Assembly (NCBI GenBank): GCA_950097015.1
Contig: CATNEN010000039.1
Location: 10,416,001 to 10,480,000, forward strand
Source of the DNA: Macrostomum hystrix
Taxonomy: Eukaryota > Animalia > Platyhelminthes
Reading direction: 5' to 3'
DNA: 64,000 bases
Program-made: the position numbers and the translations under genes
Shown here: piece after piece, positions 10,733 through 19,564 of the stretch
Layout: each line of letters opens with the position of its first letter
How positions within the stretch are numbered: the stretch's first letter is position 1
Notes under the pieces: model-generated
Database searches by the model: none
What the model saw: the letters and a program-made list of their open reading frames with translations, nothing else
Told to the model about the DNA's origin: nothing

Positions 10733-12719
10733 TCAATCTTTAACGCCAGTGTCGTCCCACGGCCAACCTGCCCTAGCGCGACCAGCTGGCTGGAATTTTT
10801 TAGCCTCGAGTGGCGCTAATTGCCACCTGTCCGTCTGCATTTCGTCTTGCTGTTTAGGTTGAAGCTTGGAATTGTTTGTTCCGTGCTCGATTGTTGCGGC
10901 TTGCCAGCGACGGTTCCGCCGTTCGCTTTCAATTCTCTCCAACGGCTGTAATACAGCTGGCAGATGATCTGTTCCAGACTGCTGATCGTGCGGCGTCCGT
11001 TGAGGCAACCAAGTTGTCTCACCTTGAGTCGGTGTCGACCACATCCTGTTAAGTGGTCATAGAGGGGTCGCTCTGTCAGAGTCCGTATGACTTCTGGCAC
11101 TTCCAAACTTAGTGTCTGTCTTACTTGTGACACTTTCAAGCAAAAAAGTCCATCTAAGATCTAAGAATGTTAACTTAGTGTCTGTCTTACTTGTGACACT
11201 TTCAGGCAAAAAAGTCCATCTAAGATCTAAGAATGTTAACTTAGTGTCTGTGTCTTACTTGTGACACTTTCAAGCAAAAAAGTCCATCTGAGATCTAAGA
11301 ATGTTAACTTAGTGTCTGTCTTACTTGTGACACTTTCAAGCAAAAAAGTCCATCTAAGATCTAAGAATGTTAACTTAGTGTCTGTGTCTTACTTGTGACA
11401 CTTTCAAGCAAAAAAGTCCATCTGAGATCTAAGAATGTTAACTTAGTGTCTGTCTTACTTGTGACACTTTCAAGCAAAAAAGTCCATGTAAGATCTAAGA
11501 ATGTTAACTTAGTGTCTGTCTTACTTGTGACACTTTCAGGCAAAAAAGTCCATCTAAGATCTAAGAATGTTAACTTAGTGTCTGTGTCTTACTTCTGACA
11601 CTTTCAAGCAAAAAAGTCCATCTAAGATCTAAGAATGTTAACTTAGTGTCTGTGTCTTACTTGTGACACTTTCAAGCAAAAAAGTCCATCTGAGATCTAA
11701 GAATGTTAACTTAGTGTCTGTCTTACTTGTGACACTTTCAAGCAAAAAAGTCCATCTAAGATCTAAGAATGTTAACTTAGTGTCTGTCTTACTTGTGACA
11801 CTTTCAGGCAAAAAAGTCCATCTAAGATCTAAGAATGTTAACTTAGTGTCTGTGTCTTACTTGTGACACTTTCAAGCAAAAAAGTCCATCTGAGATCTAA
11901 GAATTTTAATACGAGCCGTACATTTTTGTGCCTTCCTGTGCTTTTTGCTCTCTTTTGCTCGTGTCGTAGCTTTTTAAAGCTTTCACATTCTTGGCGTAAA
12001 CACTTCATTGAAAACTGAAAAAATTTATCGTCTGGCCGCTCTTACATTGGAGGCTGCTGCTTCTTTAGCCGTTCGATTTGCTCGCCAAGGCTATTTGCGC
12101 TATTCTCTAGACGCTGCAGACTTGCTGACACGACTCGCTGTTTAGTCCACCATCCGTCGTCGTCAAAATAATCCAATGTTCTGCGCATAGTTGAATGCTC
12201 TATCGTGGCTAACGAAGGTGGGTAATAATACATTCTGCCTTCGTCTCTGCCGCTATTTGCTGCCAGACGTTTGAGACGATTGGCCAGATTAACCTGAGCA
12301 CAGCAGCGGCAACCCGACGTGTAGCTTCTATATTTTTCCTGTCTGAACTCCGGCTGCCGCTGCTGCTGCTGCTGTTGTTTCTGCGGACGAAGATACTCCA
12401 ACAGAAGTTTTTCGAGCCGATAATTGTCCATGCTTGCCGATAATTCCATTCGAGGCTCTGCCTGGAATAAAGCAATTAATTTATTTATTGCGATGTGCCA
12501 GATTTTTTAACTGTCTGGATGATACTTAAAAACTAATAGGGTCAGTCTTGTTACCTTAGCTAACCTGCCACCTTTTGCGCCTGCATCTGCGATGACTTCC
12601 GGGTCCCGGCTTGTAGTATTTAATCTTCTCTCGTCTAAACGTTTCATTTTAGTTTCAATAGCAACGGAGGAATGCTCATTAGAATTTCGTGGCTGCTCCG
12701 CTGCAGTTTGGGCTGTCAT
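10733..12719 (-). CDS. Putative ~324-aa orphan protein (exons 12719-12555, 12461-12046, 12002-11922, 11045-10733)
   Basis: Four segments join in frame through GT-AG introns (LAK|AEPRMELS; PPI|VYAKNVK; EGTKM|MWSTPTQ). The 66-bp array falls inside the third intron. No homology recognised. Confidence 0.45.
11107..11905. repeat. 66/68-bp minisatellite
   Basis: About 12 units of acttagtgtctgtcttacttgtgacactttcaagcaaaaaagtccatctaagatctaagaatgtta, with +tg length variants. Confidence 0.95.
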
Positions 12720-14548: not shown

Positions 14549-17534
14549 CTATCCAGAGTTGCAGCTTGTTGTGTCAGCGGCTTCGCCTTGGCCGGCGGCG
14601 GCTGCGGTCGCGCCGTCAGTCGCTTGAACTTTCAGCAGCGGCTTTTGCATTACCTGGCCGTGACACCGGCTGCTAAAGCTTCCATTGTTGTTGCAACAGC
14701 TAGGCGTCAGAAGCACACCGATTTGCGTCCGCCGAAGCCCACCTTGGCGCATCGTTTAGTTAATGCTGCGCCTAGCGCATTACAGCCCTACCTCAGACTG
14801 GCACGGTTAGACCGACCCATCGGCACCTGGCTGCTCTACCTGCCTTGCGCTTGGAGCATCACTATGGCAACGCCGAATGGTTTGCTGCCAGATCCGTTAG
14901 TATTGGGACTGTTCGGGTTGGGGGCTGTGCTGATGCGTGGAGCCGGCTGCACCATGAACGATATTCTCGACAGGTAAGTTGAGCCAGGTACTCTCGGTCA
15001 GCTCAAAGATAAGAGCAAATTATCATCAGTTAATGTGTTCGTACAGTTAGTCAGTCATCAATCGATGTACATGTAGTCGTACAGGTAGTCACAATGGTCG
15101 TCCTGATTCATGAGAACAGTTCAAGTTTTTGATAACGTCATTCGTCGTCTGGAATTTTTTAATAGAGCACATCTTCCCACAAAAGAAGACATTATTCGAC
15201 AGTTAAGGTTTCGTACAGTCGATTTCGAAGTATCAGTGAAGCAGTAACGTTTTAAACTTCCGAAAGAGAGTAGCCCGTAAAGGGCGGTTAATCCCTTTGT
15301 CCCTTATTAATCCCTTTACTTATTAGTAACAGTGACTGATTTCTTACTGGTATTAAAAATTAACTAACGACCTTTTATCTAGGGACTTTGACAAACTCGT
15401 CCAGCGAACAGAGGACCGGCCAATCCCATCTGGCCAAGTGTCCGTGCCACGCGCCACCGCATTCCTTGTTGGCCAATCACTACTGGCCGCTTGCATACTA
15501 TTTCAATTTGATTGGTTCACAGTAGGACTGGGCGTGGCCTCGCTAGGCCTTGTGGCCACCTATCCGCTGTTTAAGCGATTCACCTATTGGCCACAGGCGG
15601 CTCTAGGTACGGAAAGTTCAGCTTAAACAGTAATGTCTTAAACCGAACACAAATCAGTTTATAAATTAGAAATGCTTAGAGTGTCCGCCCAATAACGCCC
15701 TACATGTAGATAATAAATTAATTAACAGTGTTTTGCTTTTTTCCTGCGCGCTCCAGGCGTTACACTCAACTTCGGCGTTCTGATTGGTTACTCAGCCATC
15801 CAAGCTCACTGTGATTGGCCAGTAGTCTTGCCACTGTACGGAGCTGCTATCCTATGGACTATGATTTATGATACAATCTATTCCCATCAAGTACGGGCTT
15901 CAATAACTAAATAGTATTTATCAAATTTTTTTGTGAAAACGTGGTTTGTTTGCATTTTTAAACCTAAACTATTTCTTGTTTAACCTTAGCTAGTATTTGC
16001 ACCGCCAAGCAGTCTGCTCACAGCTGTGTTGTTGTCCTTAGTGTAACCTACTAGCTACTCAGTGCGTGTGTATCGCTCATTAAGTCTCATTTAGTTGCAC
16101 CAGGATGGAAAAAGAACTCAAAAGTTGATAGTTGCCGCTGCCCCCGGTTTTGTCACCTGGTGTAGCCCTAAATTATTTAATAAACAGTGACCAAAAAACC
16201 CGGCTGGATATCAATGTTCAGTCTCTGGCTTGTTCAAGCTGAGTAACCAATCAGTAAATGGCGGCGGAACATTGTAGTAGGAATAGCATTGTGACACGCA
16301 TTGAATTGACTGCATCCTTCCTATGCACTAAAAGCTATTCAATTATCAATCTAATTGCAGGCCTCACATTTAACTATGGGGCATTGTTGGGCTACGCTGC
16401 CATTAACGGCGGCCTCAATCCTGCCGTTTGCCTGCCCCTCTATGCGGCCGGTTTTTGCTGGACAATGGTCTATGACACCATTTATGCGCACCAGGTGACC
16501 AAACCTGAGGGCTGGTCTAGGGGCGGTTTTAGACAGAGATGGCGGTTGCTTATGGATTTAAGTATCTTTTATTTGCTACTTAAAGTACAATGCAAAATAT
16601 TTTTTCTTTGCTTGTTTTTTCAGCTCTAACCTAATTAGAGCTGACTAACTAACCTACATTATTAGTTGCAATAGAAAACGGATTTTACTAATATCTCACT
16701 CAGTTTTTTGTTTAGTTATGAAATGCAAAAAAGTAAAAAGAAAATTAAAGTGCTCTCCGAACTAAATTAACTGGAACTACTGTTTTGTATTGAAAAGTTA
16801 AACAGGGGTGTAGGGACTGTCCGACGCGAGGCGATTCTGCCTTTTCCCCTGAACCCTGAGCACACGCACGCTGGCACATACACACAAAGAGGTGTCTATC
16901 TACATGAACCTTCAACCTTCAAGGCACAGTAAGGTGCACAGTACACTGTCCGACAGTGTGCTCAGGAGTCAGCGAAATGGGCAGAATTGCCGAAAAGCCT
17001 ACACGACTGATACTTTTTTAGTATTTTGTAGCAAAATTCGCATGAATTCTAGTTTATAGAATTGTTCTACTAACAGTAATACTCCTGGTACGCAATCGTA
17101 TATAATTATAATTCAAGCAAACCTTGTTTTTCAATATTTTGCTCACACTTTAGGACAAAGAGGACGACCTGATCGCTGGCGTCAAGTCTACCGCCCTGCT
17201 GTTCGGTGATGCAACAAAGACCTGGCTAACAGGCTTCACCCTGGGCATGGCGCTAATGCTGGCCACAGCTGGGGTTAACGCTAATTGCGGCCTGTTCTAT
17301 CACGCCGGCGCCATGTTCGCCTCGCTGCACCTGGCCCAGCAGGTGGCGAGCGTCCAGTTGGACAACCCGGCCGACTGTCTGGCCAAGTTCAAATCGAATC
17401 GCAATCTCGGCATCGCCTTCTGGCTAGCCCTGTTGTGCGAAAATTTCTTCGGCCTTCCGGCGCCAGGTTTCGGCGGCGGATTTGAGGCCGGCGATTCGGC
17501 CGACCTGTTCGACTCGTACGACGATAATGATTGA
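14549..17534 (+). CDS. COQ2: 4-hydroxybenzoate polyprenyltransferase COQ2 (exons 14549-14973, 15383-15606, [15757-15890 or 16361-16494], 17154-17534)
   Basis: UbiA motifs [69 protein letters not shown]. Exon sum is 1164 nt and in frame. There is no in-frame genomic ATG before the conserved core. Confidence 0.96.
15757..15890 (+). CDS. COQ2: COQ2 mutually exclusive exon, rhodoquinone (e) type
   Basis: 134 nt, ctccag|...|gtacgg. Encodes [45 protein letters not shown] with Leu4 and Ser43. Not present in the supplied ORF track. Confidence 0.9.
16140..16163 (+). promoter_or_regulatory. Intronic element complementary to the 5' splice site of the COQ2 UQ-type exon (candidate splicing docker)
   Basis: gcccccggttttgtcacctggtgt pairs with gcaccag|gtgaccaaacctgagggc (16488-16512): about 22 pairs, 11 of them contiguous Watson-Crick across the donor. 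Confidence 0.7.
16361..16494 (+). CDS. COQ2: COQ2 mutually exclusive exon, ubiquinone (a) type
   Basis: 134 nt, ttgcag|...|gtgacc. Encodes [45 protein letters not shown] with Phe4 and Ala43. Confidence 0.92.
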
Positions 17535-17679
17535 GTCGATTATAGCGTCTGTCTCAATCATTTAATTTTCGACCCGATACTAGATTAGTGAGATTGTTCT
17601 ATGACTTCAACCCGACCGAAAGACCCAATTTACACCTGATGGAAACCTTACCTGACAAGCGGCATTTTAAAGTCGTTTC

Positions 17680-18745
17680 AAACGCTTCTCTAACGACTCA
17701 AAGGCCTCTCAAGAGACTCAAAGGCTTCTCTAACGACTCAAAGGCCTCTCAAGAGACTCAAAGGCCTCTCAAGAGACTCAAAGGCCTCTCAAGAGACTCA
17801 AAGGCCTCTCAAGAGACTCAAAGGCCTCTCAAGAGACTCAAAGGCCTCTCAAGAGACTCAAAGGCCTCTCAAGAGACTCAAAGGCCTCTCAAGAGACTCA
17901 AAGGCCTCTCAAGAGACTCAAAGGCCTCTCAAGAGACTCAAAGGCCTCTCAAGAGACTCAAACGCTTCTCTAACGACTCAAAGGCCTCTCAAGAGACTCA
18001 AAGGCCTTTCAAGAGACTCAAACGCTTCTCTAACGACTCAAAGGCCTCTCAAGAGACTCAAAGGCCTCTTTAGCGACTCAAAAGCTTCTCTAACGACTCA
18101 AAGGCCTCTCAAGAGACTCAAAGGCCTCTCAAGAGACTCAAAGGCCTCTCAAGAGACTCAAAGGCCTCTCAAGAGACTCAAAGGCCTCTCAAGAGACTCA
18201 AAGGCCTCTCAAGAGACTCAAAGGCCTCTTTAGCGACTCAAAAGCTTCTCTAACGACTCAAAGGCCTCTCAAGAGACTCAAACGCTTCTCTAACGACTCA
18301 AAGGCCTCTCAAGAGACTCAAAGGCCTCTTTAGCGACTCAAAAGCTTCTCTAACGACTCAAAGGCCTCTCAAGAGACTCAAAGGCCTCTCAAGAGACTCA
18401 AACGCTTCTCTAACGACTCAAAGGCCTCTCAAGAGACTCAAAGGCCTCTCAAGAGACTCAAACGCTTCTCTAACGACTCAAAGGCCTCTCAAGAGACTCA
18501 AAGGCCTCTCAAGAGACTCAAACGCTTCTCTAACGACTCAAAGGCCTCTCAAGAGACTCAAAGGCCTCTCAAGAGACTCAAACGCTTCTCTAACGACTCA
18601 AAGGCCTCTCAAGAGACTCAAACGCTTCTCTAACGACTCAAAGGCCTCTCAAGAGACTCAAAGGCCTCTTTAGCGACTCAAAAGCTTCTCTAACGACTCA
18701 AAAGCCTCTGAAGAGACTCAAAGGCCTCTCTAATGACTCAATGGC
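17680..18745. repeat. 20-bp minisatellite (aaggcctctcaagagactca)n with interspersed variants
   Basis: About 53 tandem units downstream of the COQ2 stop. Confidence 0.97.
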
Positions 18746-19318
18746 CTCTTTGATCCCTGAGCACACGGATACGTACGCAAGCACTCTCACAGGTTTGTGT
18801 ACATCTGCCTTGATTTTATCATATCAGAGCAGTGTACAGGGAGAAGGGAGAAAGGCGAAAGCCCCCATTAACAAAGTGATTGATTATTTCTATATCGTTT
18901 TTAGTAAAATGTGCATAATTTTTAACGGAGTTTAGTTTTATTTAACCTATGAACATAAATTTAGTGTCCTGTTCAATTCACTATCGGCATTTTCTTCGTG
19001 TTAAGCTATAGCTGGTCGTGTGTTTGTGTGTGTGTGTGTCGTAAAGATGTTTTCTTGTTAGGAAACAATCAATGCTAGACTTTTATTATATAATAAAAAA
19101 TTTATGTATAAATAAATGATTTGAAAATCCACGAGAGTTGCAACCGATTACTCTCGTTATTTTGTCATGTGCCTTTGAAATTCGATTAAATTTATACAAG
19201 GAATAGTTCAATGTCCCTTACACATAAGAAAATAATTAATCAACTACCAGGATGATTTCCCCTGTGACAATTAATTGACTCGAGAACACGGGCAAACTTT
19301 CTGTTGCGCATCTTCTGA

Positions 19319-19564
19319 AACAAGAATCAAGTTGGCAGTCTTTTGGACCGTCGAGATATTCAACGGTTCTGGCCGAATGTCAGATTTTTCACACATGAGA
19401 TTTCACACACCACCCGAATGTACCTGCATCATCTCCGACTTCGGCGGTCACCGACCTTCGTCTAGACGGAGCTGCTTTGTGTATAGGGGTGTATGAAATA
19501 CACTTCCTTCCGACCTTCGGCCAGAACCGTTGAATATCTAGATGGTGGCGACTTAATTCTTGTT
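19319..19564. mobile_element. MITE-like element with ~55-60-bp terminal inverted repeats
   Basis: aacaagaatcaagttggca..ccgtcgagatattcaacggttctggccgaa is inverted as ttcggccagaaccgttgaatatctagatgg..tggcgacttaattcttgtt. Related gtcgagatattcaa motifs occur near 35830 and 46005-46150. Confidence 0.7.

Follow-up and report, generated by a model that had tools for sequence, protein, structure and literature searches.

The COQ2 gene and its alternative exons

A 64,000-nt stretch of the genome of the flatworm Macrostomum hystrix (assembly GCA_950097015.1, contig CATNEN010000039.1, positions 10,416,001–10,480,000 of the forward strand; hereafter the window, in whose own numbering all positions are given) encodes on its plus strand a five-exon gene for COQ2, the 4-hydroxybenzoate polyprenyltransferase, as recognized from open reading frames (ORFs) and tblastn matches. 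Splicing of COQ2 decides between ubiquinone (UQ) and rhodoquinone (RQ) in helminths, molluscs, and annelids, and rhodoquinone allows life without oxygen. Here, we describe the pair of alternative exons of this gene, two arms within the intron between them that are complementary to one exon or its splice site each, and a tentative model in which these arms take part in the choice of exon. The gene is single copy in the Macrostomum genome (220 Mb), in which no second COQ2 was found that could serve for internal comparison. The exons on which the argument turns are the following:

15381–15606, plus strand: constitutive COQ2 exon preceding the alternative pair, with the donor TAG/GTACGG; RNA contigs X3 and X4 cover 15381–15607 and join it to 15757 or 16361; tblastn match to the Macrostomum lignano COQ2 protein (P0001)
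15757–15890, plus strand: exon A, 134 nt, RQ or e-type by its translation, ending in IYSHQ, with the Leu and Ser signature; RNA junctions 15606>15757 and 15890>17155
16361–16494, plus strand: exon B, 134 nt, UQ or a-type by its translation, ending in IYAHQ, with Phe and Ala; junctions 15606>16361 and 16494>17155 in RNA contigs X3, X4, and X9
17155–17534, plus strand: last COQ2 coding exon, whose acceptor is common to A and B; supported by its ORF, by RNA contigs over 17154–17560 with their junctions, and by tblastn

Exons A and B are tandem, homologous, and of equal length, lie 470 nt apart, and share their flanking exons. Their translations run VTLNF...IYSHQ and LTFNY...IYAHQ, respectively. 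In all e-form exons, a Phe is changed to Leu and an Ala to Ser, whereas the a-form and pan-eukaryotic COQ2 proteins keep both residues (PMC7434440); because exon A carries Leu and Ser and exon B Phe and Ala, A is the e form and B the a form, and the RQ and UQ labels that an initial annotation of this DNA had given them are correct by that criterion. The shared length of 134 nt is not divisible by three, and retention of both exons or of neither therefore shifts the reading frame, a consequence that we derived by arithmetic alone.

Protein searches were run exon by exon, with single exons as queries. The nearest protein is PAA57658.1 of M. lignano, a species that carries both exon types (its a-form model is P0151), with 98% identity over exon A and approximately 78% over the first and last exons. 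Exon A differs from its M. lignano counterpart in one residue (44/45 including the shared first codon; 98% by phmmer), and exon B is approximately 82% identical. Judged by these identities, the rhodoquinone exon is by far the most constrained part of the COQ2 protein.

All COQ2 splice sites are of the GT-AG kind with U2-type donors. The 3′ splice site of exon A is the stronger one, with a pyrimidine-rich tract, whereas a weak, A/T-rich tract precedes exon B; a silencer of exon A would therefore be needed if exon B is ever to be chosen. Two other possible causes of exclusive splicing, steric exclusion within an intron of insufficient length and an incompatibility of U2 and U12 sites, are ruled out on reading the sequence by the 470-nt intron and by the GT-AG sites with their U2-type donors.

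Evidence from RNA comes from Logan contigs of two 2020 runs of the same organism; these contain spliced junctions and hence were treated as RNA. All four junctions expected of two alternative exons (15606>15757, 15890>17155, 15606>16361, and 16494>17155) are present in the contigs of the two samples. No junction from A to B (15890>16361) occurs among these contigs, which drop rare forms. Both isoforms are thus made and, as far as the contigs tell, are mutually exclusive. A DNA contig of "organism B" is near-identical to the locus (99.8%, 3 differences in 1445 nt).

Complementarity between the intron and the two exons

The initial annotation had singled out an intronic element at 16140–16163 as the complement of 16488–16512, across the UQ exon's 5′ splice site, and had proposed that this pairing, opposed by two local mimics of the donor and assisted by an outer helix, acts as a switch between the isoforms. 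We refer to the donor-covering helix as Box2, and to a second helix between exon A and the intron, which that annotation had missed, as Box1. The arms and the sequences related to them are:

15780–15796, plus strand: exonic arm of Box1 (CTGATTGGTTACTCAGC), exon A positions 24–40; part of a perfect 17-nt inverted repeat (I3)
16238–16254, plus strand: intronic arm of Box1, the perfect reverse complement of 15780–15796, 106 nt upstream of the exon B acceptor
16140–16166, plus strand: intronic arm of Box2 (the element of the initial annotation), predicted to pair with the exon B donor or locally with 16089–16104; its 18-mer core has no second genomic occurrence
16486–16512, plus strand: donor arm of Box2, comprising the last 9 nt of exon B and the first 18 nt of the following intron, including CAG/GTGACC; found by inverted-repeat search and by duplex and ensemble folds
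16089–16104, plus strand: local competitor (the first mimic), which resembles the 3′ end of exon B (direct repeat D1, 14/17) and is predicted to pair with 16156–16173
16140–16211, minus strand: partial copy of exon B, inverted and decayed, which corresponds to exon positions 81–134 and 18 nt of donor flank; from reverse-strand alignment

The sequences quoted in the initial annotation were all located where it had placed them, and its main duplex is real: An inverted-repeat search recovers 22 nt at 86% (I2). By RNAduplex, Box2 has 22 pairs, 12 of them contiguous over GCACCAG/GUGAC (11 Watson–Crick and one G-U), and a free energy (dG) of −37.0 kcal/mol, or −43.2 when extended. The best duplex of the B-donor window with the intron reaches −40.9, compared with −26.0 ± 3.4 for dinucleotide shuffles, none of which attained it (0/100). 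Pairing of 16152–16163 with 16488–16499 covers, in silico, the positions that bind U1 (−3 to +6) around the donor between 16494 and 16495. When the segment 15891–16600 is folded alone, that is, without exon A, Box2 is part of the minimum free energy (MFE) structure with P ~ 0.999. In folds that lack the long-range helix, the exon B donor can close on itself in a 5-bp hairpin (CAGGU with ACCUG, 6-nt loop) at 16492–16507.

The helices that the initial annotation had set around this duplex fared unevenly. Its first mimic is a computed alternative partner of the element: The free MFE structure contains the helices 16089–16093:16169–16173 and 16094–16104:16156–16166, with P 0.95 in the full-length ensemble, and this pairing is marginal against shuffles (4/100). 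The second mimic (16187–16203), and with it the pseudoknot drawn from both mimics, is at chance level (−11.2 kcal/mol, z +0.7) and appears in no MFE structure; its likeness to the donor flank arises because 16187–16203 is an inverted copy of exon B 16444–16463. The proposed outer helix, 15999–16007 with 16540–16549, was rejected as well, being no better than chance (−13.8 kcal/mol, with 14/100 shuffles as good) and found in no MFE structure, and 15999–16007 pairs locally in every fold.

Box1 is perfect over 17/17 pairs, with a dG of −28.6 kcal/mol, or −41.9 with flanking pairs, and its 17-mer occurs at two sites only in the 220-Mb genome. Perfect inverted repeats of at least 17 nt within 1.2 kb were found at three loci only in the window. 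The other two, at 971–1321 (arms of 28 and 42 nt, ~250 nt apart) and 19354–19539 (24-nt arms, ~140 nt apart), resemble transposon ends and look like the terminal repeats of small mobile elements. At a background identity of 70%, 17 straight matches have P ~ 0.002 per place. Box1 and Box2 are each specific for one of the two alternative exons, and shuffle tests of the A donor, the body of exon B, and the constitutive donor gave no excess complementarity to the intron.

Much of this complementarity can be traced to the exons. Aligned to exon B and its flank, the reverse strand of the intron scores 61, against a shuffle maximum of 41 (0/500 reach it); under strict gap costs, 53/69 columns are identical (~77%), and the duplex of 16140–16211 with 16441–16512 has a dG of −62.5 kcal/mol. 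On this alignment, the element of the initial annotation forms the end at which an inverted copy of exon B is best preserved. The Box1 intronic arm starts 27 nt beyond that copy and has a different affinity, so that the antisense stretch is a mosaic of blocks: At the 33 columns of 16140–16211 that discriminate A from B, the intron equals B in 25 and A in 3, whereas the Box1 intronic arm equals exon A at all six of its discriminating columns. With both boxes masked, the residual likeness to exon A is not significant and that to exon B is weak (P ~ 0.03). We therefore discarded a single long inverted copy of a whole exon as the source, only the 3′ 54 nt with flank (B-like) and the 17-mer (A-like) being significant. 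As far as the alignments allow, the mosaic is not foreseen by one neutral duplication and would require either two inverted-copy events within 115 nt or selection for pairing.

An origin of the arms from a transposon or other repeat is excluded because neither core occurs a second time in 220 Mb and the region exists as a single copy, and no known RNA family in Rfam matches within 15300–17600 at E ≤ 1. Judged from sequence, then, the complementarity is real, non-random, and exon-derived. Orthologues were sought with a protein search using the read-through ORF 16258–16626, which found no close relative, and with a metagenome scan for relatives, which returned only a homologue lacking introns (L002) and what looks like a COQ2 of vertebrate type with one a-type exon (L003), neither of use for comparing the intron.

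Two computed states and the choice of exon

Box1 (15780–15796 with 16238–16254) and Box2 (16141–16162 with 16489–16510) interleave; the helices cross, and a nested structure therefore has room for just one. In the free ensembles of 15700–16600, 15560–17200, and 15700–16700, Box1 has P 0.999, Box2 has P 0, and the local hairpin of the Box2 arm with 16089–16104 has P 0.95; the fold of 15757–16520 likewise has Box1 and the local hairpin in both the MFE and centroid structures (z −1.9, 0/20 shuffles). When either the exon A arm or the intronic strand that it pairs with is kept unpaired, Box2 rises to P 0.998 and the local hairpin is gone, at a cost of 9.2 kcal/mol over the Box1 state (ddG +9.2). 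The mean P(unpaired) of the exon B donor (16492–16500) drops from 0.45 in the Box1 state to 0.11 in the Box2 state, which bears out the proposal of a strong long-range helix able to cover the UQ donor.

These two states suggest a mechanism, to which we assign a probability of roughly 0.4: The intron may act as a two-armed splice toggle, its antisense arms pairing with either the body of exon A or the donor of exon B and thereby selecting the exon. In the ground state, Box1 would be formed and the Box2 arm would be parked in its hairpin with 16089–16104; exon A would then be tied up and the exon B donor free, yielding the UQ isoform. In the alternative state, the splicing machinery, an RNA-binding protein, or a helicase would occupy the exon A arm or unwind it, and the antisense element would be freed; Box2 would shut the exon B donor, and exon A would be spliced directly to the last exon, yielding the RQ isoform. 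The 134-nt length would serve as a backstop, nonsense-mediated decay (NMD) clearing the frame-shifted errors that contain both exons or neither. The helices would have to form in vivo and to affect splicing for any of this to hold, and if they do, the choice might also be regulated, for instance in response to hypoxia. A more ambitious form of the proposal seems to us possible but less likely than not, namely that the arms constitute one exon-derived antisense module in which arm 1 silences the RQ exon and arm 2 masks the UQ donor, such that engaging one exon closes the other, and that the coq-2 a/e choice would here have its first cis-acting mechanism, and mutually exclusive splicing a new evolutionary route by way of inverted exon copies.

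In favor of the toggle, the computed logic by which engagement of exon A closes the donor of exon B would be what mutual exclusion needs. The A/B ratios of contig word depth also differ between the two samples (21.4/17.4 and 8.7/21.2 in the two runs, with a third run giving the B form only), but such depths are no measure of isoform ratios. Further points weigh against it. Whole-region folds are only mildly better than those of shuffled sequences (z −1.1 and −1.9). For a pseudoknot with both helices in place, the energy is about −304.6 kcal/mol before any loop or pseudoknot penalty, compared with −297.6; by this estimate, a long-loop pseudoknot would be sterically possible and roughly isoenergetic, and the helices would exclude each other in nested folding only. 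Thermodynamics alone is therefore no guarantee of their exclusion. The effect of a 17-bp intra-exonic helix on inclusion is assumed, and Box1 could equally bring the donor of A and the acceptor of B together. Finally, inverted duplication is sufficient to explain the complementarity without any function.

This last point is the core of the strongest rival, which we regard as well possible if short of an even chance. Here, the arms would be neutral, tolerated relics without a regulatory role, left by one or two local events (inverted duplication, template switching, or gene conversion) as the tandem exons evolved, and the choice of exon would fall to RNA-binding proteins, splice-site strength, and NMD. 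Such an origin agrees with the position of the Box2 arm within a 72-nt inverted copy of the exon B 3′ end that shows ordinary decay (~70% identity outside Box2), of which Box2 is not significantly better kept than the remainder (19/22, P 0.06), and with the place of Box1, which is roughly collinear with the inverted copy and at most 13 nt from its expected position. It also has parallels in other two-exon pairs, such as those of Caenorhabditis elegans, that are governed by RNA-binding proteins (PMC3585155, PMC4165533). The mosaic sits less easily with it, as a B-like part and an A-like Box1 demand two events or selection; so does a perfect 17-mer that has no significant flanking likeness to exon A once masked. 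Moreover, a helix of about −37 kcal/mol on the 5′ splice site of an exon that must be used would be unlikely, on physical grounds, to be free of effect.

Two further explanations carry less weight. The switch as drawn in the initial annotation, in which only the donor-blocking helix matters, opposed by the two-mimic pseudoknot and with an outer helix looping out the UQ exon, and in which exon A takes part in no pairing, is improbable as a whole: Box2 itself holds up as a strong helix, with the first mimic as its computed local alternative, but the outer helix, the second mimic, and hence the two-mimic pseudoknot fall away, and the scheme passes over Box1, the dominant helix of the full-region ensemble, which displaces Box2 in nested whole-region folds. 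That the complementarity arose by chance, with neither a common origin nor a function, is very unlikely. It is true that 8/400 native windows of the same geometry in the 64 kb (2%), mostly in GC-rich parts, match the energy of Box2, which also counts against reading function into that energy. However, our arithmetic puts the expected number of 17/17 matches of a 134-nt exon to ~1.1 kb of flanking intron at ~1e-5, none of 500 shuffles equals the reverse-strand alignment to exon B, and there are two elements, each matching one of the two alternative exons; the perfect repeat, the alignment shuffles, and the rarity of such repeats in the window were already enough for this judgment.

Relation to known systems and features around the gene

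Control of mutually exclusive exons (MXEs) by RNA structure and the masking of donors by stems are both known kinds of system. Competing structures of a docking site and its selectors have been described for arthropod MXE clusters, namely Dscam1 exons 4/6/9/17, 14-3-3zeta, MRP1, and srp (PMC6071210). As in these, the COQ2 exons are tandem, homologous, and equal in length, and long-range pairings that, at the COQ2 locus in nested folding, cannot all form are proposed to decide the exon. The targets in the arthropod clusters are intronic selectors served by one shared docking site, an arrangement absent at the COQ2 locus; here, two adjacent antisense arms derived from inverted exon copies have targets of their own: For one it is the body of an exon, for the other a 5′ splice site. 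Two partners, the B donor and 16089–16104, do compete for the Box2 arm, but the second is unlinked to exon A. Because its exons do not each have a selector for a common docking site, the locus falls outside the strict docking/selector definition.

Human ATE1 exons 7a/7b and SCN9A exons 5a/5b (PMC7797038; PMC12772994) are closer in being two-exon MXEs in which competing or bridging helices shift the choice, and there, as at the COQ2 locus, NMD alone is insufficient to explain exclusivity. Their elements are intronic, conserved in vertebrates, and validated by mutagenesis and antisense oligonucleotides, whereas COQ2 has one exonic and one donor-covering arm, both predicted. Stems that sequester a 5′ splice site, such as TSL2 of SMN2 exon 7 (PMC1802598) and that of MALT1 exon 7 (PMC9348792), share with Box2 a helix over donor positions −6 to +5. 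These are short local hairpins; in COQ2, the donor has its partner 326 nt upstream, in an antisense copy of that very splice site. Another such stem sequesters the 5′ splice site of MAPT exon 10. By analogy, Box2 would be expected to compete with the U1 small nuclear RNA for the donor.

The evolutionary side of the proposal has a precedent in a model by Ivanov and Pervouchine (2018; PMC6071210), in which the duplication of segments of exon plus intron likewise yields regulatory complementarity as a by-product. That model concerns the tandem copying of one arm of an intronic stem-loop that was already there, whereas at the COQ2 locus the exons themselves were copied in inverted orientation; the words "inverted" and "antisense" are absent from that paper. 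Going by sequence comparison, the locus would thus differ from the known cases in its exonic arm, its donor-covering arm, and its origin from inverted exon copies.

With the coq-2 a/e splicing that sets UQ or RQ (Tan et al. 2020; PMC7434440), the locus shares the gene, the 134-nt pair, the Phe-to-Leu and Ala-to-Ser signature, and the exclusive use of the exons. That paper gives no cis-acting mechanism for the choice, and Macrostomum is not among the species that it lists. More generally, the literature that we searched contained no paper on how the coq-2 exon is chosen and none treating the COQ2 of Macrostomum, which agrees with the remark in the initial annotation that no cis mechanism had been described.

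The e-form of COQ2 is a proposed anthelmintic target (PMC7434440, PMC8659336), and the locus offers a concrete hypothesis for its control, consisting of two short arms, in a genus whose best-known laboratory species, M. lignano, has both exon types. If the toggle is real, it would show that inverted exon copies can give rise to competing RNA structures in lineages other than arthropods and vertebrates; should it fail, the locus would still be a clear example of exon duplication littering an intron with strong but idle complementarity.

Part of the intron between exons A and B, 15986–16202, is covered by RNA contigs from two independent samples (16007–16202 at depth 4.4 and 15986–16138 at depth 3.6), and such contigs cover neither 15908–15983 nor 16212–16287. 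The covered stretch includes the local hairpin at 16089–16173 and may stem from an intron fragment that is stable, from a cryptic transcript, or from uneven sampling of pre-mRNA.

The intron after exon B contains an imperfect inverted repeat, 16830–16865 with 16956–16991 (36 nt, 81%). Its arm at 16955–16991 is a high-copy repeat, with many loose ends and a summed contig depth of ~1200–2600 in runs of DNA as well as of RNA, and the repeat as a whole (16820–16991) looks like a small transposon. Long tandem arrays flank the gene, downstream at 17694–18932 and upstream at 11091–12015, with several reading frames open across the repeats; one has a 60-nt unit reading RLKGLSRDSKASQETQRPLK and the other the unit LVSVLLVTLSSKKVHLRSKNVN.

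The M. lignano UniRef model A0A1I8GS08 (P0151, 1857 aa) fuses COQ2 with a downstream ankyrin-repeat/SMG1-like gene. The same neighbor follows COQ2 in the window (from 20020 onward), so that synteny is preserved and the fusion probably reflects an artefact of the gene model. In the Echinostoma caproni protein VDP80774.1 (P0002), the translations of an e-type exon (...IYDTVYSSQ) and an a-type exon (GLTFNW...IYAHQ) stand only four residues apart, which hints that the spacer between the exons is very short in this trematode, unless the gene model itself is an artefact.

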